This document shows, piece by piece, positions 1 to 14,579 of a DNA stretch of 14,579 nucleotides. The notes beneath the pieces are model-generated. The model saw nothing but the letters and a program-made list of their open reading frames with translations. It was not told the origin of the DNA and did no database searches. Where the stretch lies: contig CBFFSA010000088.1 of assembly GCA_965644495.1 (NCBI GenBank), positions 1-14,579 on the forward strand, read 5' to 3'. Positions within the stretch are counted from its first letter, which is position 1. The number at the start of each line of letters is the position of its first letter. Source of the stretch: Perkinsela sp. CCAP 1560/9 (Eukaryota; Protista; Euglenozoa: Kinetoplastea). The translations under genes and the position numbers were made by a program.

Positions 1-2313
1 CATAACTATCGTCACGATCAAGTTTACGAGGCTTTGGTTTTTGTTCAACTTCTTCCTCTATACAAAACGGAAAATTAAGAAAAATAATAAAATAAAAAAT
101 AAAAAATAAAAAAAAAAGGGGGGAAAAAAAAAATAATGAAAAAAAGAAAATGAAAAGAATTACCACCAGGAACGACAACACCCATAGCACGCAACCTATC
201 TTTTGTTTTCTCAGAAAGTTCTTTCTTATTAGCTTTACGAAAAGAAGGAAGAGGTTGATCAGTAGTAGGAGCAGAAGGACTCGAACTTGCAGCAATCCCC
301 AACTCCTCCAAAACCTTCAACTCATCCAAAAGTTTGTCTTCTTTCTCTCCAAAACTTGATGATAATCCTGTTGGTGGTAGTACTCCTGTTTCTTCTGCTG
401 TTGCTTCTGCCAATTTCTTCTTCTCTTCTTCTTGTTTCTTCTTTTCTTCTTCTTGTTTCTTCTTCTCTTCTTCTCTTTTCTTTTGTTCTTCTCTCCTCTC
501 TTCTTCTAACCTCTTCTCCTCTTCTTCCAATCTCCTCTCTTCTTCTTCTTGTCTCCTCAACTCCTCTTGTCTCAACCTCTCTTCTTCTTCTCTTTGTTGC
601 TCCGCAGCTAGACGTTGCTCTTCCTCCATCAAAGCCTCCAATCTCTTCTGTTCAGCCAACTCCGCTTGTCTTCTCTCTTCTTCAGCCCGCCTCTCTTCCT
701 CCTGTGCTCTCTTCCTTTCTTCTTCAGACCTCCTCATTTCCTCTTCAAATTTTTCTTCAGCCTTCCTCCTCTCTTCTTCAAGGGCTCTCCTCCTTTCTTC
801 CTCTTGTTTTCGAGCGATATCGTTTATTTGTGACTTGGGTCTTCGTGGAGACTCAGAAAGAGAATTTCCCACTTTGGTTGGTTCCATCATTGATGCAGAA
901 GCTCGATTAAACCCTCGATTTTGTGTCACACAAAACCGAGAATGTTCTTTCACCTTCGAAACAGGAATCTGTTGCTTACAGAGTGAACAAGTCAAAGCAC
1001 CTAAAGATTCCATACTTGCATGCGAAAGGGCAGGCCGTTTGGGCGGTTTAGCAGGGGCGCCTGCCCTTCCTGGACTTTCCAGAGTGGGTGAATTTAATTG
1101 ACCAGGAGGGGCACGAGGTGGCAACGATGGTGGTGGTCCCCTCGCCGAATCAGGAGCATCACCCTGAGAGGAACGAAGATTACGAAGATGTGAAACGTCA
1201 GATTGTGTTGGGCGACCTTGCAAAACTTCAAAACCAGAAAAGGGTTTGTCTCCGCGGCGGATTTCGATTGTGTTGATCCCTGCCAGAATTAACATGATGT
1301 TTTCATCAGGATCCGCTTTTCTTGGGAGGACACGACCTGAAAAGAGTGAAAATAAATATTAATGAATGTGGTGAGATGGTGAAGGATATTATTCAAAAAA
1401 TCTTATTCAACAACAACAAAAAAAAAAAGATACGAACCGAAAGTATCTGATTTTGGACCATTTGGAGCAGGTAAGATGTGAAAAGAAAGTGTATCATAAT
1501 CCAACTTCAACTTCTTTGCAACTTCGTAAAGAAATGCTTCAATAATCGTCTCTCCATCTGTTGCCACTGCTGACTTACTCGCAGTTTCCTCCCACACTCG
1601 AATGACTCTTTTTGGTAGGACCTTTTTCTAAAGAAAAGAGAAAATGTTTAGAATTTTTTTAATTATTGTTTAAACCACTCAAAAAGAAAAAGAAAGAGAG
1701 AGGAGAGAAAAGAAAACCTGTAAACGCCTCGAACCTCGATTCCCTCCTGAAGGAGCTCCCTCCATCGTCGCTCCACTTTCGGTACGAGAAACAGGCACTC
1801 CTGAACCTTCAGTTTTAATGATTGATTGAGAATTTTTGAATGATGTTGATCGTCTGTACGCCTGGATGATTGGGGTTTTTTAGTTATAAAAATAAATGGG
1901 GGGGGGGGGGTAGAAAGGAGGCATTTTTCACCAATAATAAAAAAAAGGAAATCAAAAAGAGAATAATTTTTTTTTTCAAATAACAGAGGGACAAACAATA
2001 ATGACCCCCCATCGATTTAAACTTGACAAACAATCACAAAATCAACACAAACAAAACCAACACAAACAAAAAACCTTTTTCATTTCAACATTCGCCGCAT
2101 CTTTTCGGAGTGTGTTTTCTGTTCCATCTTTGATAAGTTGTGAAACTTGACGTGTGAATCTGTAGTAGACCATAAGAAAAGAGAGAAAAATAACAAGATA
2201 ATAATAAAAAAAGAAAAGAAAAAAGAAAAAGAAAAAGAAAGAAAAAGAAAGAAAAAGAAAGAAAAAAAAAAGAAAAAAAGAAAAAAAGAAAAAAAGAAAA
2301 AAAAAAAAAAAAG

Positions 2314-2408
<95 letters not shown>

Positions 2409-3519
2409 TCTTTGTAACACCACCAGAACAAGCCTGCCTCAAAATAGTCATCCAAGCAGCCATACTCTCTTTCGTCTCAGCACAAACAGCAGTTGTCTTC
2501 TTTGGATCAGAAATATAAAACATGTGAGGAGGAAGTTTGTCATGTTTTACTCTTGGTAATTCTACACTTGTTGTTAACCCAACTTGAATGGCTCCTCGAG
2601 GTTTTTTACTCTGTTTTTTTTTGTTTGTTTTTTTTTTTGTTAGATTTTTATTTTTGTTTTATTATTATTTTTTCTCTTTGTTTTTTTATTTTCTCAATTT
2701 TTTTTTCAAATAATTATATTTCTATTCATAATAAGAGAAATCCTTTCACATTAAACAATCAAGGCAACAACCAATTTTATGAGACAATCTATCTAAAAGC
2801 TAACCGAAGATTGATTCTAAACTCTTCTCCTTTCTCTCTTCTTTCGACATATTTTTCAAGAAACTCCAATTCAAATAAATAAATAAATAATAAATCAAAA
2901 GAAATAAAACAAAAGAAATAACAAAACAAAAGAAATATAATAAAATAAAAAAAAACAAAACAAAAAAATAAAAACCATTGGACGATCATAATATTCCAAA
3001 GTTTTTTCCTTTAAAACAAACCATTTCATATCCCATCCTTTCCCTCCAGTTCGTTGTTTTCGAAGATATCCCTCAAATAAAACCCCCTTTTTCTCTTGTG
3101 ATTGTTTTCCCTTCTCTTTCTCTTTCTCTTTCTCTTTCTCTTTCTCTTGTACTTTTCCTTTTTCTTTGTCGTGTGTCTTCTTCTCTTTGTCGTGTGTTTT
3201 CTTCTCTTTCTCTTTCTCTTTTTTGTCCTGTTGATTCAAGGGGGTAAGAAAAGAGGGATAAAGAGAAGGAGAAGAAAGAACAAAAGAGATGAAGAAGAAG
3301 AGTAAGAGAAAATAAGAACAAAGGAAATGAAAGAGAAAAGAGGGACAAAAGAAAACAAAGAGACAACGAGACAAAGAGACAAAAGAGACACACGAGACAA
3401 AAGAGACAAAAGAGACACACGAGACAAAAGAGAAAAGAGACAAAAGGGAGAAAAGGTGAGGGTGAGAAACAAAAGAGAAAAGAGAGAGAAAAGAGAGAGA
3501 GAGAGAGAACGTGAGGCAT
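1..3519 (-). CDS. Multi-exon PH + RA-like + C2HC zinc finger + single-alpha-helix signalling adaptor (3' end beyond the left window edge, >=704 aa)
   Basis: Inferred exons (minus): 3519-3511 (MPH), 3227-2976, 2610-2408, 2159-2075, 1861-1718, 1627-1438, 1336-164, 57-<1. All 7 introns are GT..AG with compatible phases (0,0,2,0,0,1,1), giving one stop-free frame: MPHDKKEKEKEKKTHDKEKK...VLFEGYLRKQRTGGKGWDMKWFVLKEKTLEYYDRPM/SKKPRGAIQV...AETKESMAAWMTILRQAC...EEEVEQKPKPRKLDRDDSY. The 9-nt first exon is the least certain part. Confidence 0.85.
405..816 (-). other. E/R/K-rich charged single alpha helix (SAH) / coiled coil, ~135 aa
   Basis: Repeating EEERRR / EEERKR / QEEEKKK blocks with no Pro or Gly. 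Confidence 0.8.
930..989 (-). other. C2HC zinc finger, UBZ4/Rad18-type spacing
   Basis: CSLCKQQIPVSKVKEHSRFC = C-x2-C-x11-H-x3-C. Confidence 0.7.
1257..1615 (-). other. Ras-association / ubiquitin-like beta-grasp domain (split by intron 1437-1337)
   Basis: KRVIRVWEETASKSAVATDGETIIEAFLYEVAKKLKLDYDTLSFHILP...GRVLPRKADPDENIMLIL matches the RA/FERM-F1 layout by eye: beta-beta, T-x-x helix ending KKL.L, beta, R.L..DE.I. Confidence 0.6.
2200..2403. repeat. Intronic poly(A)/(GAAAAA)n tract (poly-U in pre-mRNA), with ~90 uninterrupted A at 2314-2403
   Basis: Read directly; lies in intron 2407-2160 of the PH gene. Confidence 0.95.
2425..3087 (-). other. PH domain (split by intron 2975-2611)
   Basis: Classic PH pattern: EGYLRKQ...W..KWFVLK..TLEYY...KPRGAI...FYI......A.T.ESMAAWMTILRQA, with the invariant C-terminal helix Trp. 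Boundaries approximate. Confidence 0.9.
3361..3510. repeat. 9-bp minisatellite (GAGACAAAA / GAGACACAC units) grading into (GA)n
   Basis: gagacaaaa gagacacac gagacaaaa gagacaaaa gagacacac gagacaaaa; in intron 1 of the PH gene. Confidence 0.85.
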
Positions 3520-4033: not shown

Positions 4034-7000
4034 TTAGTCCACCTGAAAAGTCAACTTTCTTTGAATCGGAGCAGATTCAGTATCAATACAAAACGAAATC
4101 TTATCATCCTCTTTCATCTTCCCATGGCTCAAAGTACGAGCCCGAATTCTCTTGTCTTCGCTCTTTTCTTCCTCCTCTTCTTCAATTGCTTCTTCTTCAC
4201 CAGAACTTCGCATAATACGATCAGCATCCTCAACTTTCATTAACGTTTGGTTCCTTACAATATTCTTCTTCATTCCAAACATACTCTTTGTCCTCGTCAA
4301 TTGTCTCTGAAGTTGTTGTGGGTTTGAAGTGGGAGGGACATTTTCGGGGGGTTTTCCAATAGTATCAAGATCTCTCAAATTGGCAAAGGCTGCTTGTTTG
4401 GAGACATTTCGATCTATTAACTTGATAGAAGGCCTTCTCATTAACAACAATGGTTTCGCTTTTCGGCCGCTCTTGAGAGGTTCTCGTTGTGGCTCAACAG
4501 GTGGTAATTCAATGCTCATATTACGGTGTTCCTTCTCAAATCCTTCTTCATTCGAAGTCTCCATCATAACATCGTTGAGTCTCAAAAGAATTTCCGAAAA
4601 AGGTGGTCGTCGTTTGGGTTCTTGATTCCAACAATCTTCGATGAGACTTCGGTAATGGCGACTACATCGATCGGGAATGGGAGGTCTCGCTTTATTCAAG
4701 ACTGTCTCTTGAATCTCCCACATGAACTCAAACTCTTCATATGGTTTTGTTCTCACCAACATCTCCCACATAATAATCGCATAACTATAAACATCCACTT
4801 TCTCGGTATAAGGAAGACAAGAAAGAATCTCAGGAGCCAACCAAGTGGGGTTATCGACAACTCTTTCTTGTAAATCAGGTGAAAGAAGAAGCTTCCTCGA
4901 TAATCCAAAATCTGCTACCTTTGCAATTAACCTTTTTCCGATTCCTGTTTTCTCTTCCGTCAACAAAATATTGGGGCTCTTAATGTCTCTATGAATCAAA
5001 TGATTTTTGTGCAAAAACTCCATTCCAAGCGCAATATCCGTCGCAAAATGGACCCGCAAATCCCAATCGAGAACATTTTCTTTGTTGTAAATATAGTCGT
5101 ACAATGTCCCGTATTGCATAAACTCTAGAACAATACAGAAAGGCTCCATAATGAACCCTGGAAAAAAGAGATATTCAATCTTCAAATATATGGTTTTCTT
5201 TTTCTTTCAAAAAATAATAAAAAATAAAGAAAGTATCTCGAAATATTATTGCATTCAAAAGGCTCACAACAATGAAAAATAACAATAAGAACAAAGAATC
5301 AATTATTCACACACACAAAAAAAGAAAATAGAAAATAGAAAATAAAACCTTTTAAATCGACAATACGAGAGTGTTGCATCGTACTAAACATGGAAACTTC
5401 CCGTCGAAACTCATCAAACACAGACAACATTTGATCATTTTGTTCCTCTTCACCTTCTCCACTTTCTTCATCACTATCATTCTCCAAAGAAGCCATCTAT
5501 ATAATTGAAAAAGAAAAGAAAAAAAAGTCCATAAATTGAAAAAGAAAGGAAATGAGTGAATGAATATTGAAGAAAAAAGAAAGAGGAAATAAAAGCGGAA
5601 ATAAAAGAGGAAATAAAAGAGGAAAATAAAAGAAGAAATAAAAATGAAAAAATATGAAAAAATATGTTTAAAAAAAAAAGACAAACCGAGGGTAATACGA
5701 GCTGTTTTACGGCAACATATTCACCCTTCCAACGAGCACGATAAACTTTTGCAAAAGCACCTTCTCCAATTTCATCCAGTTTTTCAATGTCTTCCCATCG
5801 AATCCCTTCACCTCGAACAAGCCTCAAACTCATGTCTGGTACTAATTTACTCGTCAGAACAACAGTCCCAGATTTTCGGCAAACAAGAGTTTCCTTTCCA
5901 GCTGCTACAGCCACTTGACACTCTCGCAAACTGAACGAAAAGGGCTTCGGGTCATCATTTAAGAGGCAATGAGAACACGGCACTTTCACTGTCATCGGAA
6001 TCTTCAGCTTTTCGGTTAATAACATATCCATGTTTTCAGTCATAACAGAGAAGTGGGAATTACTGTTTTCATCACCATCCAGCCTTAACTTGATCTGTCT
6101 ACCACTCTCTGACGTCTGCAATAAAACTTTTGTCTTATCCTCATCACAAGTGATCAGAATCCCTGCTTGCCAATGAGCATCAGGGGTCCATCCAGGAATC
6201 TGCATAAACTGAACGAGGAGCTTTGGGAAGAAGGTTGGGGGGGGTAAATACTCCAAGAAATAGTCTCTTCCGTATTTTCCCACACTTGGTTCGTTCTCCA
6301 GCGTTCGTCCGCCCATTCTTGACATCACTCTTCGAAGGCTCGTCGTCTTTGGCAGGATCGCCATTTTTGGTCTGTCTTTCTCTAATAAAGAGGGGATGAG
6401 ATAGCCTTTTGCTGTTGGGGAACACGTCGGGCCACCCTCGGATGCGGCTCGTGCCCTTGTGCTTTGCGGGGTCCCAGGTTCTCTGTCTTCTTTGGGTTTC
6501 ATTCGGCGTCTCATATAAGTTGCTGGAACAGACTCGATCTCATAAATCAACCCTGCATTACATAAACTCTTCTTAATAAAAGGCAAGAACTTGGTAGGAA
6601 ACTCTGGCGGTGACCAAACTAATGGCGCATGCTGTTCTAATAGAATCGCACCCACCACGACCTTTCGATCATTTTTGACGAGTGTATTGTACATATTGAT
6701 CATCCACTGAGGATCCAAAACAATAATGTCATTGTCAACATCTTCAGCATAACGAACAATCCCTAACTTATGAAGAAATTTTACGGCATTTTTGGTATCA
6801 TCCACTCCCACTTCTTTTGCTATGTGAGAGAATGAGTCAAAGTTGACAGTTGAGAAAGTGTGTTGTGATGCGTGTCGAAATGCTTTCATCTGGAAAGAAA
6901 AAAAAATTGTGAATTCGCTGCTCCTTAGACCTCCAATAAAAGAAAAGAAAAAAGAAAAGAAAAAAGAAAAGAAAAAAGAAAAGAAAAAAGAAAAAAAAAA

Positions 7001-10000
7001 AAAAGAAAAAAGAAAAAAGAAAAAAGAAAAAAGAAAAGAAAAACCTTTGCTTCGAGATATAAAAACGGGACAGAAACTTGAAGAGGCATTTCGGGATGAC
7101 TCACAGTTAACTTAATGATCGAGTTGACTACCTCATCCATTCCTCTCTCTGTTTTTAGGCTCACAGGACAATAGCTTCGAACCAATTCCATTTCTTCTGG
7201 GCACCGAGCCTTATTCTTGATTTGGTTAAACACACTCTTCACATACCCAGCAGAACACATTCTATCTTCCCAATGTGTTCCACAAATGATGAGTGGAGAT
7301 CCAGGAGCATACGCCCCAAGGATATTTAACCAACTGTGGACGTCTTCTAACTCTTCGGTCTTAGTTAAGTCGAACGAGAGGAGATAAATCACCCAGTCTG
7401 TGAATAAAAAGAGGCGGTGGCAAGGATCAATTCCAGAACCACTGTGAGAATCAATAACACTCGTATCCCAAATCGAAAACTCAATGTAATCATCCAGCCC
7501 AGAATACTCCATCAAGGAAGTTTTCACTCTCCATTCGACAAGCTGGAGTCTTCTGGAAGCTTTACTGGCTGTAAAGTCCTGGGCTGTCACAATATTTGTC
7601 GTTGGGCTTCCAGACGCATCAGCAAGACCAGTTGCCAACCCTTCGTTTGAAGAAGATGAGGAAGACGTTGTCCCTCGCCCGGTTGTCCTGAGCGCTTTTC
7701 CTCGACTTTTCCTTCCGGTGTTCAGAAGCGCAGCAGCCATCTTTCGATCTGTGTCTCCCAACAGGACCACCTTCACTCGATAAATACTCTTTGTTGATTC
7801 TTTTCCAATTTCAAGCTCGCGAAGCCGCTTCAAAAGCTCCTTATCTTCTAACTTTAAAACATCTTTGGGAAGATTACGCAACGGATTCCCACCTATCCTC
7901 AAAGTTTTGATTCCAGTTAAATATGTGACAGCATACAATGGAAGTTGGGTTATTCGATTGTTGCGGACATCGAGGGTGCGAAGGAGCTGAAGTCGTTGAA
8001 TTGAATCTGGAAGGGCTCCGATTTTGTTATTTGCAGCATAAATATGTCGTAAGCGAGATAAGCGACCTAAGTTATCAGGGAGGTTGACGAGTACGTTATC
8101 GTTGATAACGAGTTCTTCGAGCATTTGCATTTGGGTGACGGCATCCGGAAGAGATCGAATCCCGTTGTGTGATAAATTGAGTACAGTTGTTGCACCTAAA
8201 CAAAAAAATGAATAAAACAAATTGTTGACTGCTTGGGGGGAATTGGGAAAAGTAAGGGGAAAGTAACAAACCAAGAATCTTAAAATTCAAAGTTGGGAGA
8301 AGTTGATTCATATCCTTGAGGTCTCGACCACGGATATTTAATTCTGTGTCGCGACGATCAAGATACTGTGTTATTTGGCGATTCGCTTCTAAGTAACCAG
8401 CATATTCCTCAATCAATTCAGGAGGAAGACCGCGTACAGCTAGGCAAGTTTGGGGGGGAAACAAAGGAGGGGGAAGAGATATATACATTTTGGCTTGTGG
8501 GGTTGAGGGTCCAGGTTTTGAAATAGTTATAGAAGGGACTGAAGCGCTGGATGCGCTCAGAGGAGAGGATGCATTGAGAGAACTTGCGTTTACTGAGGAA
8601 TTGAAGAAAGGAAGAAAGGAAACTTGCGGATTTGAAGTTGATAAAGACTTTGTGGTTGGAGTTGAAGGCTGAAGTTGGGAAGAGGAAAAAGCCTGGGGCT
8701 CGGATGACGATATAGAAACAGAAGAGGAAGAATGGGAGATTGATGGATTAGTGGTTGAGGCAATCGCAGCTGAAGATGAAGATTGGACCAGAGAGGGCGA
8801 AGAAGCCTCGCTAGTGGAAGAAGAAGGAGGGGTCATTAAAAATTCATAAATGCTCTCGTCTGAACCGCTTTCTTCGGCAGAAAAAAGTGTCAACTCATCC
8901 ATCACCAAATTCGGTCGCAATAAAGGTAGGAATCCTTTAGCAGCTTTATAGTGTATCTTATTGTTATGTAAATAAAGACGTCTTACGCGTGAAGTGGTCT
9001 CAAGTAAAGGTCCGAGAAGTTGAAGGTCTTCGTTTGGATTTGCTAAACCCTCATGTGACAGGTCAATCACTTCTACCTCTGTTTCACTTGAACAAACAGC
9101 CCTCACAAATATTTTTAAGAGCTTCTTCTTCAATTTGAGACCCCTTAAACAAATCTTGAGTAAAAACTTGTCTCCTCGTTCAAGACGCGAAATAATATCA
9201 GGAAAATCATCAACAGCCCCTTCAAAATTCTTTGACAGAAACGAAGTCTCTGAGGGCGACTCACCTCTGCTTCTTCCCAGAGAACTGGTCTCTTTGGATT
9301 TCAAACCCTTCTCTTTTTTAGAACCAAACAAAGAAGGCCGTTTCAAAAAAGAGGCTTTTCTTTTTGTTGGAGAACCAGTTTTGCTGATACTCGGTTGGGA
9401 AATTAGGGGTCCAACACCGCTGTCAGTTAGGAGGTTTTCAGAGGAGGGAGATGAAGATACAGTGTTTAGTGAATGGCGGTGTTGGTTGGCCTGTGCTTTT
9501 TGTAGCTCTGGGGTGCCCCCTGTGTAGGTCTTTCTGTACGCCTTTCCCTTTTGGAGTGTCTTTTCAGATATTTGGGTTGGATAAGAACTGTTTGTGCCAC
9601 TTGGAGAGGGAGAGGGAGGTTTTGAAGAGGGAGTAGGTGAAGAAGAGACAACTGAAGATGATGCGGAAGAAGCCAAGGAGCTTGTTCCATCGAGTAAAGG
9701 GTAAGAGGGAAAATGTTCATTACTTGAAGAGGCCATCGCCTTATCAACATGAGTTTTCAAATTAGATCCTGAAGTCGACCTCTTTTTGGAGGGCTTTAAT
9801 GAGAGCTCAGGCTGTGGGTGGTGATGGTCACAAAAAGAGAAAGAAAAAGAAAGAAAGAGAAAAAGAAAGAAAGAGAAAGAAAAAGAAAGAAAAGGGGAAA
9901 AAGATTGTTCAAAGGAAAAGAAGGACAAGGAAACAAGGAAGATCTAAGAGAAGAGAGAGGGAGAGGGAGAAGACATAGCAACACACGAACCTTTGTTCCA

Positions 10001-10209
10001 GAGCTATGGGAGGAATTTCGATGGCGAGAGCGAGAGCGAGAGAGGCGTTTCTTCTTTTTCTCTTTTTTTGATGACAAATCATCTCCAGTTGATCTCGTCA
10101 GCTCATCTTCTGGGTCGCATTGTTGTTCAAAGAATGAATTTGAGTTATTTCGTGGAAAGGGAGAAACAGATGAAACAGATGAAACAGTTTCTGATGTGTC
10201 TGAATCCAT
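4034..10209 (-). CDS. ROCO-family LRR-ROC-COR serine/threonine (TKL) kinase, Dictyostelium Pats1/Roco-like, ~1794 aa, degenerate ROC GTPase (called ROCO-1 here)
   Basis: Inferred exons (minus): 10209-9991, 9811-8272, 8195-7045, 6889-5687, 5496-5349, 5157-4034; 5385 nt in total. All introns are GT..AG with matched phases (0,1,0,0,1). LRRs (LNLSHNGIRSLP, LDVRNNRITQLP, LRIGGNPL), ROC (EFSIWD...IYLLSFDL...SWL...APGSPLIICGTH...VS), COR (AVKFLHKLGIV..IVLDPQWM..YLIPSLL..FFPKLLV..HWQAGI..VPCSHC..LVPDMSL), kinase (GEGAFAKVY, VAVK, FRREV, HRDIKSPN, DFG, NPTWLAPE, DVYSY, CW.QEP.RRP). Confidence 0.93.
4570..5803 (-). other. Tyrosine-kinase-like kinase domain, catalytically intact (spans 2 introns)
   Basis: Gly loop, beta3 Lys (VAVK), alphaC Glu (RREV), HRD+K, DFG and APE are all present. 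Confidence 0.95.
5583..5643. repeat. ~12-bp tandem repeat (GAGGAAATAAAA)x~5 in intron 4 of ROCO-1
   Basis: gaggaaataaaa gcggaaataaaa gaggaaataaaa gaggaaaataaaa gaagaaataaaa. Confidence 0.8.
6940..7043. repeat. (GAAAAGAAAAAA)n low-complexity repeat in intron 3 of ROCO-1
   Basis: Read directly. Confidence 0.85.
7100..7785 (-). other. ROC domain of ROCO-1 (degenerate)
   Basis: RVKVVLLGDTDRKMAAALL at the P-loop position; IWDTSVID at the WDFAGQ position; GTHWED and VSLK at G4/G5. Confidence 0.85.
8880..9215 (-). other. N-terminal RNase-inhibitor/tropomodulin-type LRR block of ROCO-1
   Basis: IISRLERGDKFLLKICLRG...VEVIDLSHEGL...LLETTSRVRRLYLHNNKI..AAKGFLPLLRPNLVMDELTL: ~28-aa LRR spacing, distinct from the ~23-aa LRRs next to ROC. 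Confidence 0.7.
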
Positions 10210-11412
10210 TCTTTAAAGAGAATGCTCGTGTTCTGGCCCACAGGATAGGCTGTTGTCAACAAGGAAAAACAATTAGTTTGTGTTTCCTCCAAACAAATGG
10301 TCATCAGACTTTTCAGCTGAAAACAAGGAACAAAAAAAAACGCTCCTTCCTGATTTTTCCTCTTTCTTTCTTTCTCTTTTTCTCTTTGTTTTTATGAATG
10401 CACCCACCCACCAACCACATTCTCTGAATATATTCTTGACCTTTTTTCTCGAACTCTCTTCTCTTTCATTCTCTGAACGAACATTGTTTGACAACACTTT
10501 TTTGCAAAAAAAAAAAACAAACCAAACAATATCAGAGATCAACAACAGAAAACCATTTGCTGAAAGCAAAAATATACAAAAACACAAAACACAAAAAGAA
10601 AGAAAAAGAAACAAACACTACACAAGAACAAAAAAAAAAATAACAAAAGAAAGAAAAAAAAAAAAAACAAGCAAAAAACAGCCGTTTTCCTTCTTTATGA
10701 CGTCATCTATTTCTGTTTTAAAAATTGGGATTATTTAAAAAGACCCTATTGCGGAATGTTCCAAAAGCTGTTCTCTTTTGCGAGGTCTGTTGGCGAACAA
10801 CAACAAAAGGGACAAAGATGTGTGACCAAGCTACCACATAACTTTGTCAAAGATTTGAAATCTTTTTTTTTTGTGGAATTCCAAACATGTTTGGAATTTT
10901 TTTTCAAAAAAAAATTGGCCATCGATTGTTTTTACCTTTCCTGTGTCTTGTGTCCGGACAAACAAAAAATGTCTCAAAACTGAACAGTTTCATTCTCAAA
11001 ATAAAGTTTTCTCCTTTTTCAGAAAAACTTTTCAGAAAAGTAGTTTTTTTTCTGAAACAAAAAAAAAAAAGAGAAAAAAAAAAGAGTTGTTCCATGAAAA
11101 AAATATGAACGCGTTCATATTTTTCGGATTTTTCTGGATTTTAGCCATCCAGCCGATGCTAACCGAAAAACCCAGAAAAACAGAAAAAAAGACAAAAAAG
11201 CCAAAAACAGAAAGGAACTAAAAGGTTTGTCAAAAAAAAAACAGAGAAGACAGAGACGAGACCATCCCATACCCACGGTTCCGAAAACAACTTTACTTGG
11301 CACATTGAGATCGATTGTGGTTCACCTCTTCTCTTAAAGAAAGGGGTTGGTGTCCAGTTCTTTTTTTTATATTGAGAAAACGAGTTGGTGAGATATCCAT
11401 CTCTCGAAACCA
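10210..11412. promoter_or_regulatory. Divergent (putatively bidirectional) promoter region between the two ROCO genes
   Basis: ~1.2 kb AT-rich, apparently noncoding spacer between oppositely oriented ATGs at 10209(-) and 11413(+); contains poly(dA:dT) tracts and dyad elements. Confidence 0.7.
10877..10898. repeat. Perfect 22-bp palindrome AATTCCAAACATGTTTGGAATT
   Basis: The sequence equals its own reverse complement (checked base by base); flanked by T tracts. Confidence 0.95.
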
Positions 11413-14400
11413 ATGGAAACCGAACCGCTCGACGCGTTAACCTACATCCGAAAGGGTGGTAATCATCCAAAGACTCCTCCTGGAAGATTGGCTGAGCTTA
11501 CATCTCCTGATCGACAATTAAGGGCAATTGCAACTCGACCAAACAGACTTTCGAGAACAAGCGAGATTGAAAAACCTTTTTCGCCTGACTCAATCGCTGC
11601 CAAGATACCTGAGGAGATCGAGCGAAACCTTCACGAAACCTTCAGTAAGGGAGATAGGCCTCTTCGAGCACAGAGTGAAATGGCAACCGATGGCCCCCCA
11701 AAATCCTTGTCTTATGAACCCCTTCGACCCTCCAAAACAAAGATCCCAAAAAAGCATCCATCAGAAGGAAAAGAATTACACCAATTAAGCTCTCCTCTTC
11801 CAATAAGTGGTGAGATTGCAAATGCTCAAGCGATGCACCAGATCGAAGAGTTGAGTTATTTCTTGAGTGTTGAGCAAAAAAGATGCGCAAAGTTGATCCA
11901 GCTCTGCCAGGAAAATGGAGTTCAAATCCCCCCTTCATTGCTCGAACCACCAGTTCATCGAAAGGCGACTATTGTTGGGAAAGCGGAGCCAAGGTCAAAA
12001 AATGGAAAATTGGGAACAAAATCAAAGAGAGTAAAAACGCAAAAAACGAAAACTGCTGGAATTGAGATACACGATTCAGTTGGGGATTCCGGTGCAGAAC
12101 AAATGAAACCGCTTATCGAGGAAGTGAAAGAAAAAATCCAAGGAAGCGAGATTGCTGGCGCAATTTTGACGAAGAATTTGAAGAGGCTCGAAACTCTTTT
12201 GCAGCTTTCAAATCGTAAAATCAACGTGTATCTTAATATCACTGAGAGAGAAGGGGATGTAGAAGAGGAAGGGGGGATTGGAGAACAACAACAGGAGAAA
12301 GAAGGACAACAGGTGGAGAAGGGAATAACAGATCAAGAAGAAAATAATCCATTTTCAAGGGACAGAGGCTCATTGAAGCGTGCAATGGGAGCGGTGTCTT
12401 TATCACATCGAGACCGATCATCCACAGCGAAAGATCGCCGGAGTTTTGTGACTCCACTTTCTTTGGCTTGTAGTCTCCCTGATATGTATCCTTTTATTGA
12501 CCTTCTTCTTTCGCATGGCGCTTCAGTCAGTACACCTCACTCTCCTTTCTCTCCACTTCATGTCGCGACGTATTATGGAACGATGGAGGTTATTCAACTG
12601 TTGTTTAATCACGGCGCAGATTTACAAGAGCACACTCGATTCAACATTCCTTCGAACCCATCTCCTATTCAATTGTGCCGTGCTCGTCCAACGAAAGATA
12701 TCATTCAAAAACAAATACTCGGGTTTTTCAGAGCTGCTCTGACCATTTCTCATAACGAAGACAAAAAATCTTTGTCCCTATCGAAGATGGATCTCGCAAC
12801 TTTGCCACGTTCTGTTTTGAAATGCCGAGATTTAGATTCTCTTGACTTGTCAAAGAACAGGTTAATGACAATACCCCCATCTCTTTGTTCAATTCGGAGA
12901 CTCAAGAGCGTTGATTTAAAAGGAAATCCTCTTTCGCTTGTACCGCCGCTCGTTCGTGACCCCTCCAATGGGATGAAGATGATTCATTTTTTTCGTGATG
13001 CTGAATCTCATACTCCTTCTTATCATTGGCCTTACGCTCGTTGTTTCTTATTGGGGGGTCAAAAATCTGATCGAGTTACTATAACCAAAATTCTAAGTGC
13101 TGAATGTGCGCGATCGAATGAAATACCGCTTGTAAGTTCCTCAATTGATGTGACTGAGTTAGTTATCCCCATCTCTGAATCTCATGAAATTAATATGGCG
13201 ATATTTGATTTTGATTCGCGCTCTCTTGACCATCAAGCTTTTCGATTCTACTTTGGGGATGCAACTCTCTACTTGCTTGTTTACGATTTAAACTCTGCTG
13301 ACCCACTTCAAGAATTAGAAGGATGGCTATCACACTTGTCAGAATGTGTTACGAATCCTTGGGTTGTGCTTGTTGGTGTCTCGTTTGAAGAGTCGCAGTT
13401 CGGCCAATATACAGCGGCTTCGATTCAAGATGCGTATGACAAAGACCCCCGTATTAAGGGCCGTATTTTGATTCGTGGAAAATCGAAAGAATATATGCTA
13501 GAGTTATTAAAACAAATTCAGATGTATTGCGCGAAACAACCATCATTGAAAAAGGAAATTCCTCCCTCTTTTCTTCTGCTGTCTCATTACATTCGAAGTC
13601 TCCGATCAGGAGCGATGCTTGAGGCTGTGGCTCCGCAACTGTCACTTGAACCTCATCCCTCTGTATTGGAATGGGACGAGTACTTAAAATTAGCAGAAGC
13701 TGCGCATATCCACCCAAAACAATTAGCTGAAGTGACGAGGTTGCTCAATTTTAGTGGGATTATTTGTTCTCCAGAATTGGGTGAAGATGGCTCATTGCTG
13801 GTCGATTTGGATCTGGCTTTGGCATCTGTTGAAGGAGTGTCGGAGATGTCGGACACAATTCGGGGATTTGGTGGTGTAATTTCTGGAAAAGAATTGCTTG
13901 ATTATTTAAAAGATTTTGGTTGGCAAGCAAGGTTCTGTGTTTTACGGTTGATGGAAAAGTACGGTTTTTTGTATCGTTTGGGGTCGACAGGAATTTATTG
14001 TGAGTATCTACCCGAGCCAAGTCTTTATGATCTTGAAAGGAGTAGTTCACCAACAATTGAAATTGATGAACAACTTGAAGGAGAAAAAAAGGTTGGGAGT
14101 CCTCCAGATGATAGAAGAAGAGAAAGAGAAAAATCGATGGTTCGGCAGAAGAAACTCCAAGGCCTCGGACATTGCCCTCCAAAGCAGATTAGGTCACCTG
14201 AGAGAGTACCAGCTTCTCAACCGAATATCTCCCCTCCAACAGTTCGATCCTATTCTCCCCCGAACCCATGCGCAAAAAAAGACTCTCTTGCGAGTCGTCG
14301 AGAAAGTTCTTTTCGCTCTCCACAACTCATCAGGCAGAAGAAGGCCAATCCTATCTCGCAGATGAGGCGTTGCATAGCTGAACAAAAGGGGGTTGAGGAA

Positions 14401-14579
14401 GGGGGAGTTTTATCTTCCAAGATGGGGTCTCCTTCAAAAAGAAGGAAATATGAAAAGGTTTTGATCTTTTTGGAGGTTGAGAAAGCCAAATTCTCGATTC
14501 GTGTGGGGCTTCGTGTTTCCAAAAAAGCAACAATCAAAGAGTTATTGAAGTTGGCGGATGCGAAGAGGGGGATTTCGAT
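11413..14579 (+). CDS. Second ROCO-family protein: ankyrin repeats, LRR, degenerate ROC, COR-A, S/P-rich insertion, ubiquitin-like domain; C-terminus beyond window (>=1055 aa; called ROCO-2 here)
   Basis: Frame +1 has no stop from the in-frame TGA at 11389-11391 to the window end; first ATG at 11413 (ccaATGg; METEPLDALTYIRKGG...). Ankyrin: TPLSLACSLPDMYPFIDLLLSHGASVS, SPLHVATYYGTMEVIQLLFNHGADLQ. LRR: LSLSKMDLATLP, LDLSKNRLMTIP, VDLKGNPL. ROC-like: ARCFLLGGQKSDRVT, MAIFDF, LYLLVYDL, LEGWLSHL, VVLVG. COR-like: KEIPPSFLLL, LEWDEYLKLA, VTRLLNFSGII, LRLMEKYGFLY. Missing from the ORF track, presumably because it has no stop in the window. Confidence 0.92.
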   Translation, partial: METEPLDALTYIRKGGNHPKTPPGRLAELTSPDRQLRAIATRPNRLSRTSEIEKPFSPDSIAAKIPEEIERNLHETFSKGDRPLRAQSEMATDGPPKSLSYEPLRPSKTKIPKKHPSEGKELHQLSSPLPISGEIANAQAMHQIEELSYFLSVEQKRCAKLIQLCQENGVQIPPSLLEPPVHRKATIVGKAEPRSKNGKLGTKSKRVKTQKTKTAGIEIHDSVGDSGAEQMKPLIEEVKEKIQGSEIAGAILTKNLKRLETLLQLSNRKINVYLNITEREGDVEEEGGIGEQQQEKEGQQVEKGITDQEENNPFSRDRGSLKRAMGAVSLSHRDRSSTAKDRRSFVTPLSLACSLPDMYPFIDLLLSHGASVSTPHSPFSPLHVATYYGTMEVIQLLFNHGADLQEHTRFNIPSNPSPIQLCRARPTKDIIQKQILGFFRAALTISHNEDKKSLSLSKMDLATLPRSVLKCRDLDSLDLSKNRLMTIPPSLCSIRRLKSVDLKGNPLSLVPPLVRDPSNGMKMIHFFRDAESHTPSYHWPYARCFLLGGQKSDRVTITKILSAECARSNEIPLVSSSIDVTELVIPISESHEINMAIFDFDSRSLDHQAFRFYFGDATLYLLVYDLNSADPLQELEGWLSHLSECVTNPWVVLVGVSFEESQFGQYTAASIQDAYDKDPRIKGRILIRGKSKEYMLELLKQIQMYCAKQPSLKKEIPPSFLLLSHYIRSLRSGAMLEAVAPQLSLEPHPSVLEWDEYLKLAEAAHIHPKQLAEVTRLLNFSGIICSPELGEDGSLLVDLDLALASVEGVSEMSDTIRGFGGVISGKELLDYLKDFGWQARFCVLRLMEKYGFLYRLGSTGIYCEYLPEPSLYDLERSSSPTIEIDEQLEGEKKVGSPPDDRRREREKSMVRQKKLQGLGHCPPKQIRSPERVPASQPNISPPTVRSYSPPNPCAKKDSLASRRESSFRSPQLIRQKKANPISQMRRCIAEQKGVEEGGVLSSKMGSPSKRRKYEKVLIFLEVEKAKFSIRVGLRVSKKATIKELLKLADAKRGIS
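12451..12680 (+). other. Ankyrin repeats of ROCO-2 (2 clear plus degenerate copies)
   Basis: TPLxxA...LLLxHGA and SPLHxA...G...VIQLLFNHGAD consensus. Confidence 0.9.
13030..13535 (+). other. ROC domain of ROCO-2 (degenerate)
   Basis: Follows the LRR cap and precedes COR; strand pattern kept; G1 = GGQKSDRVT, G3 = DFDSR, G4 = GVSFEE. Confidence 0.8.

Follow-up and report, generated by a model that had tools for sequence, protein, structure and literature searches.

A head-to-head pair of ROCO kinase genes with predicted pseudo-GTPase ROC domains, conserved among putative paramoebid amoebae

The window analysed here is the entire 14.6-kb contig CBFFSA010000088.1 (14,579 nt), filed under Perkinsela sp. 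CCAP 1560/9; coordinates below are window positions. It carries two divergent genes, ROCO-1 and ROCO-2, whose products belong to the ROCO family by architecture. In both proteins a ROC (Ras of complex proteins) domain is immediately followed by a COR (C-terminal of ROC) domain and preceded by N-terminal leucine-rich repeats (LRRs), with ankyrin repeats (Ank) as well in ROCO-2; a C-terminal tyrosine kinase-like (TKL) kinase is found in ROCO-1 within the window and in ROCO-2 through both of its orthologues. Our preferred reading, held at about even chances, is that these are two old, distinct paramoebid ROCO kinase genes with pseudo-GTPase ROC domains, which have been kept back-to-back and would likely serve one signalling pathway. 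The pseudo-GTPase part of this reading is well supported by the sequences. Functional coupling of ROCO-1 and ROCO-2, for which the linkage of the genes is the evidence, is an evenly balanced call.

The G1–G5 motifs bind nucleotide in Roc domains, no part of Roco proteins is more conserved than the DxxG region, and COR provides the dimer interface (PMC6337361). In ROCO-1, G1, G3 and the G4-like motif are altered (Table 1), the switch-I Thr is missing and G5 (VSLKT) looks normal. The structure model has a helix beginning three residues after strand 1, and in the window copy Arg replaces the Gly before the P-loop Lys; the orthologues keep GK. An alternative P-loop further on (TGRKS) was rejected, being unconserved and placed inside helix 1 of the model. 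In ROCO-2, G1 reads GGQKSDR, with no GK in three species, and G3 reads FDFDS, with no Gly and with its Asp replaced by Asn in both orthologues; the switch-I Thr-Asp-Gly and G4 are lost. The motif losses of both partners are present in every orthologue covering the motif. Among the other ROC domains retrieved by the searches, whose query should favour degenerate ROCs, 81/83 have kept G1 and 73/83 have kept DxxG. Profile, alignment and orthologue comparison agree with the preliminary description that the G-motifs of the two proteins have degenerated in different ways. Judged by G1, the G2 Thr and G3, neither domain looks like a functional Roc GTPase, and both are, with high confidence, predicted to be unable to run an Mg-GTP switch. 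The ROC of ROCO-2 very likely binds no nucleotide, and a loose guanine pocket may persist in that of ROCO-1.

The fold itself appears to be retained. AlphaFold models of the two ROC domains (predicted local distance difference test values, pLDDT, in Table 1), which were built on canonical ROCO alignments so that the fold call leans that way, show the full strand and helix order of a G domain. The best Foldseek matches were LRRK1 (8e05/8e04), LRRK2 and MbRoco2 (4wnr), with Rab and Rho proteins also found; ROCO-2 matched LRRK1 with an E value of 2e-15. In a comparison of two relatives, the nonsynonymous and synonymous divergences (dN, dS) of the ROCO-1 ROC come to 0.006 and 0.79, the variable loop being excluded by the alignment filter, and the kinase has a dN of 0.038 and a dS of 0.95; the ROC is the most constrained domain of the protein. 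The dN/dS ratio was computed for ROCO-1, and constraint on ROCO-2 was judged from its open frames and 27–44% identity. Because the motif losses are common to orthologues and the dN of the ROCO-1 ROC is very low, they do not reflect decay. What marks both domains as predicted pseudo-GTPases is a G-domain fold retained in the models together with degenerate motifs under purifying selection. We consider it doubtful that the ROCO-1 ROC retains some non-standard form of nucleotide binding or hydrolysis, which would leave ROCO-2 as the only true pseudo-GTPase: the P-loop lysine (GK in orthologues), G4-like motif and G5 of ROCO-1 are kept and the conservation of its ROC is extreme, but the loop is short, the Ser/Thr has become Met, the switch-I Thr and the DxxG Gly are missing, and the window copy has lost the Gly preceding the lysine.

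Both genes have open frames and are transcribed. Each exon was searched against databases and folded separately, and joined protein models were used in the local pairwise comparison and the tree. The ROCO-1 exons on the minus strand lie at 10209-9991, 9811-8272, 8195-7045, 6889-5687, 5496-5349 and 5157-4034, with GT-AG introns throughout and no internal stop. A start at 9736, which would widen the gap to 1,676 bp, was rejected; orthologues and a spliced contig place the start at 10209. The protein runs from a low-complexity N-terminus through a ribonuclease inhibitor (RI)-like LRR cap, a Ser-rich insert, LRRs, the pseudo-GTPase ROC, COR-A, COR-B and the TKL kinase to a tail, and Pfam detects the LRRs, Roc (22 bits, below the cut-off), COR-A, COR-B and the kinase. 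The distance between the two ATG codons is 1,204 bp, in agreement with the 1.2 kb first noted. The different N-termini were likewise confirmed, as an RI-type cap in ROCO-1, which is conserved in orthologues (E 4e-7 against that of Mayorella) and has no Pfam match in the window copy, and as Pfam-detected Ank in ROCO-2. The best similarity between the two proteins is 21% over 127 aa (E 6e-6), in line with the little mutual similarity described before.

Run X1, which may be the source sample, provides an unspliced DNA contig of 9.5 kb that bridges both genes and extends 4.75 kb beyond the window. The contigs of run X2 have the character of RNA; one of them has the intron spliced from 9991 to 9811 exactly as modelled and includes an extra untranslated exon near 10523-10616, and a second, the ROCO-2 transcript of 7,147 nt, begins at 11212 and outruns the contig end by 3.8 kb. 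Transcription of both genes is therefore seen within a single run, the two 5' ends being ~0.6 kb apart; the transcript contigs carry no expression levels. It is very improbable that the pair reflects misassembly or pseudogenes. Such an artefact would suit a small stray contig on which ROCO-2 is cut by the contig end, but the junction is spanned by an independent contig, transcripts are spliced, the reading frames stay open and dN/dS lies well under 1.

The head-to-head order, which had been proposed for examination in related genomes, recurs in two other paramoebid assemblies. In ERZ24894578 (locus L016), a ROCO-1 orthologue, present as its 5' end, lies divergently upstream of the best relative of ROCO-2 (P0001, 33% identity), and its first intron occupies the same position as in window ROCO-1. 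In ERZ25074155 (loci L019/L024/L025), a 523-kb contig carries a ROCO-1 orthologue with a complete ROCO-2 orthologue divergent upstream. Two further ROCO-1 orthologues lie on contigs that end before the 5' end of the gene. Scans of JGI metagenomes yielded no paramoebid orthologue, and P0148 was set aside as a generic LRR match. Synonymous sites between the window and ERZ25074155 (L019) are saturated, and the downstream neighbour of ROCO-1 differs among the window, L017 and L019/L021 (a PH-domain gene versus ATP synthase). In this single comparison, then, the pairing has outlived the one testable flank. The two ROCO genes are the only ones in the assembly, a count that is uninformative genome-wide as almost no host DNA is present; since the assembly is mostly symbiont, paralogue counting was rejected as a control for chance adjacency, and it is the conserved linkage that favours an adjacency beyond chance.

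Trees of COR-B plus kinase were built by a quick-tree method. The nearest sequence relatives of the pair are amoebozoan ROCOs (Mayorella, Stenamoeba, Vermistella). ROCO-1 belongs to an amoebozoan subfamily and is sister to the Mayorella protein P0109 with a Shimodaira–Hasegawa-like approximate likelihood ratio test (SH-aLRT) support of 99; P0109 has the same architecture, and its ROC is partly degenerate, with a G1 ending in GKR and no DxxG. ROCO-2 forms a long branch near HRDLRSPN-type ROCOs. An exclusive sister relationship of ROCO-1 and ROCO-2 was rejected by the approximately unbiased test (p-AU 0.019), and a clade of ROCO-1, ROCO-2 and P0109, corresponding to an ancient duplication that preceded the Mayorella split, was not (p-AU 0.16). 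The two genes thus are not recent duplicates as judged from these trees, and the idea of a recent tandem or inverted duplicate cluster finds no support, the partners not being each other's closest paralogues. In the amoebozoan-type ROCOs P0037, P0111, P0131, P0132, P0109, P0104 and P0121, mostly of the ROCO-1 subfamily, the P-loop lysine is kept and the DxxG glycine is lost. This pattern suggests stepwise, repeated switch decay in the amoebozoan-type lineage.

Several observations, besides the lean of the ROC models noted above, weigh against our reading of a functionally joined pair. Partial degeneration of the ROC in the ROCO-1 line is found as far back as Mayorella, and the subfamily shows repeated loss of G3, so the two ROC losses may be unrelated to the pairing. 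The divergent neighbour of a more distant subfamily member is aprataxin and not a ROCO. Linkage is seen in three assemblies only, two of them closely related, with background synteny from one flank only. Finally, a 3.0-kb DDE transposon sits in the ERZ25074155 spacer, ~150 bp upstream of the ROCO-2 start, which argues against a tight shared promoter. These points bear on an alternative we regard as the less probable but still a substantial contender, namely that GTP sensing was lost independently and that the genes, having separate jobs, are neighbours only since divergent pairs with a short spacer seldom break. The partners come from different subfamilies and evolve at very different rates, the ROC decay of the ROCO-1 line reaches back to Mayorella, the spacer sequence is unconserved and tolerates a transposon, and L016 and L025 share ordinary genes downstream of ROCO-2, so that micro-synteny is common at that depth. 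Evidence against passive linkage of this kind comes from P-loop loss, rare among ROCs (2/83) yet found in both neighbours, and from the pairing having outlasted the other flank of ROCO-1.

The ERZ25074155 transposon (L019 843-3878; also L022 and L023) is a pogo/mariner-like DDE_1 element; its terminal inverted repeats measure ~35 bp, its transposase frame is open over 679 aa, and it is multi-copy on many contigs of that assembly. The spacers of the window and its relatives have no common sequence. In the window, the spacer contains two perfect palindromes, at 10877-10898 (22 bp) and 11099-11124 (26 bp), the only ones in the window with arms of at least 8. None of 300 shuffles produced such a palindrome (0/300), and the orthologous spacers lack them; possibly they are transposon footprints or strain-specific elements. 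As they are not conserved, they were not counted as a shared promoter element.

ROCO-2 was first proposed to be a sensor dependent on the ROCO-1 kinase, and this was not borne out. Both ROCO-2 orthologues continue with COR-B and then a TKL kinase that has a GEGGF loop, VAIK, the helix-C Glu, HKDLRSPN, DFG and APE, that is, an intact-looking non-RD kinase of their own with all core motifs present. The window copy ends before the kinase and the rest of the gene was not found in the assembly; the transcript running 3.8 kb past the contig end also counts against a kinase-less sensor. The COR of ROCO-2 is recognised in the window by structure alone, and COR-B exceeds the Pfam cut-off in an orthologue. 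The claim of an inserted domain held up, in the form of a conserved block of ~85 aa within the COR region. Pfam and PDB searches with this insert were blank; its named look-alikes in the Atlas are mostly ubiquitin-like (PI3K p85B, kindlin F0, plexin RBD, TUG-UBL), with scores of 0.76-0.80 that serve as leads only, and it is probably a ubiquitin-like (beta-grasp) domain as judged from these look-alikes. Between the VAIK lysine and helix C, the kinases of both orthologues also contain ~370 aa of low-complexity sequence (L016 6490-7600; L025 ~15000-15900) with a short conserved motif, FWKR.KATSPGSPV, in its middle.

In the same species pair, ROCO-2 is less conserved than ROCO-1 in the ROC (27% vs 78% identity), COR-A (34% vs 71%) and LRRs (52% vs 67%). 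Within ROCO-2, conservation is highest in the LRR and Ank repeats (46-57%). Non-RD kinases have been linked to immune receptors. The faster evolution of ROCO-2, its inserted COR domain, its non-RD kinase, the conserved head-to-head order and the proposal of ROCOs as receptors in Ectocarpus (PMC3341825) could be combined into an obligate heterodimer like that of paired plant receptors, in which a fast-evolving ROCO-2 detects some foreign or stress ligand and then switches on the conserved ROCO-1 by COR-COR contact. We find this improbable: ROCO-2 keeps a full kinase, the presumed ligand surface of LRR and Ank is precisely what it conserves best, and, in contrast to the Ectocarpus ROCOs with their clusters and birth-and-death turnover, it persists as a stable orthologue whose LRR block has not expanded. 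An immune sensor/executor pair is rated at that level at best, and an obligate ROCO-1/ROCO-2 heterodimer of any kind is only slightly less unlikely.

Under our preferred reading of a coupled pair, a nucleotide-blind ROC-COR would be stuck in one state and would need an outside trigger. It may serve for dimerisation and as a rigid scaffold linking the LRRs to the kinase, and the near-invariant ROC of ROCO-1 could offer a protein-binding or locking surface. The outside input might plausibly be a free small GTPase bound by the probable ubiquitin-like domain inserted in ROCO-2, or else ligands recognised by the Ank and LRR repeats; the former would be likened to Rab proteins engaging LRRK2 (PDB entries). 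With both partners being kinases, the output would be trans-phosphorylation or a parallel output, not a dead sensor driving an executor. The fullest form of this scheme, an obligate COR-linked heterodimer in which neither partner has an internal GTP switch, ROCO-2 reads an outside signal, for instance a small GTPase in its GTP-loaded form via the insert, and the kinases activate each other, is speculative and on balance unlikely.

The setting of the contig bears on the species to which the genes belong. T-rich GT-AG introns occur on the window contig and a few other small contigs, and the large contigs of the assembly carry intronless genes. The Perkinsela-type symbiont is intron-free and its Paramoeba host is intron-rich (PMC5601477). 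Two different 18S rRNA genes are present in the assembly (C58:32767-34872 and C11:510796-512820; GC 38% and 50%), ATP synthase beta is a single, divergent, kinetoplastid-type copy, and no G-alpha was found in the assembly. A gene adjoining one ROCO orthologue clusters with a Paramoeba aestuarina protein at 90% identity. These features fit an assembly made up mostly of the kinetoplastid symbiont with a little host amoeba DNA, and we infer that the window contig comes from the paramoebid (Paramoeba-like) host. Downstream of ROCO-1, positions 1-3519 (minus strand) hold a multi-exon gene, which is not the neighbour of ROCO-1 in the relatives; its product has a PH domain, a weak match to a UBZ-type zinc finger and a charged helix of some length. 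In both relatives the gene after ROCO-2 is secreted esterase/depolymerase-like (L016 11298-13000; L025 18829-21104), and in L016 a G-alpha gene comes next.

Table 1. Positions of the ROCO-1 and ROCO-2 features in the window
Feature	Position	Strand	Basis or remark
ROCO-1 coding region	4034..10209	-	Six coding exons, 1,794 aa
ROCO-1 TKL kinase	4568..5790, three exons	-	VAVK, HRD, DFG, APE intact; RD type
ROCO-1 COR-B	5834..6271	-	PF25497 over cut-off
ROCO-1 COR-A	6530..6862	-	PF16095 over cut-off
ROCO-1 ROC (predicted pseudo-GTPase)	7099..7791	-	Canonical-ROC profile E 5e-23; model pLDDT 79; dN/dS ~0.008
ROCO-1 G4-like	7264..7281	-	GTHWED (T[HN]WED across orthologues); guanine-specificity Asp shifted or replaced by Glu
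ROCO-1 G3	7456..7470	-	WDTSV (WDMSV in orthologues); DxxG glycine lost
ROCO-1 G1	7738..7758	-	GDTDRKM (orthologues: GDTDGKM); shorter by one residue, with Met in place of the Mg-binding Ser/Thr
ROCO-1 RI-like LRR cap	8831..9253	-	50-54% identity in orthologues
ROCO-1 5' untranslated exon	10523..10616, outer end approximate	-	93 nt of spliced X2 contig match; intron 10250-10522 GT-AG
Untranscribed spacer, ~0.6 kb, candidate divergent promoter	10617..11211	.	Between the two transcript 5' ends
ROCO-2, 5' 1,055 codons	11413..14579	+	Single open frame from ATG, runs off contig end
ROCO-2 ankyrin repeats	12448..12627	+	Pfam Ank, Ank_3 over cut-off
ROCO-2 short LRR block	12766..12942	+	Pfam
ROCO-2 ROC	13024..13542	+	Weak Pfam Roc, 23.7 bits; profile E 2e-14; model pLDDT 88
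ROCO-2 COR-A-like domain	13543..13992	+	Structure model and Foldseek; 34-43% identity to orthologues
ROCO-2 COR insert, first half of ~85-aa conserved block between COR-A and COR-B	14440..14579	+	Alignment

A search of the literature returned nothing on pseudo-GTPase Roco proteins or on a conserved head-to-head ROCO pair. The pair shares its (Ank)-LRR-ROC-COR-TKL kinase order with human LRRK1 and LRRK2 and with the Dictyostelium Roco proteins Pats1, GbpC, Roco4 and QkgA; unlike these, it is without G1-G3, ROCO-2 also lacks G4, and ROCO-2 has the COR insert and the ~370 aa in its kinase N-lobe. How the ROC GTPase cycle controls an LRRK2-type kinase is still debated (PMC6337361). The pair would represent natural LRRK2-type kinases without the ROC switch residues and could serve as a direct test of what a nucleotide-free ROC-COR does, all the more in ROCO-1, where the ROC without switch residues is nevertheless the most conserved part of the protein. 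Other proteins with pseudo-GTPase domains include CENP-M and the dynein light intermediate chain. Those of p190RhoGAP (PMC6523970, PMC9840978) are alike in their kept small-GTPase fold, degraded nucleotide motifs and conserved scaffold; the domain of our pair differs in being a ROC coupled to COR and kinase, and its pseudo-GTPase nature is read from sequence and models.

The plant NLR (nucleotide-binding LRR) receptor pairs RRS1/RPS4 and RGA5/RGA4 are encoded head-to-head, with one faster evolving partner that carries an extra domain. The ROCO pair resembles them in these respects and differs in that both partners have intact-looking kinases; as Pfam finds no NB-ARC or NACHT core in either protein, the pair was not filed as NLRs. 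If the heterodimer is true, the principle of linked pairs would extend to a kinase family and to a protist group for which we found no description, and a true mutual-activation module would stand as the equivalent of paired receptors in a protist and would offer an LRRK-type kinase that is naturally GTP-independent. Closest in genomic setting are the candidate LRR-ROCO immune receptors of Ectocarpus (PMC3341825), which are also physically linked LRR-bearing ROCO genes of a non-animal eukaryote; they have expanded into tandem clusters in which genes are born and die rapidly and LRR exons are shuffled, whereas the pair described here consists of stable, dissimilar kinase orthologues.

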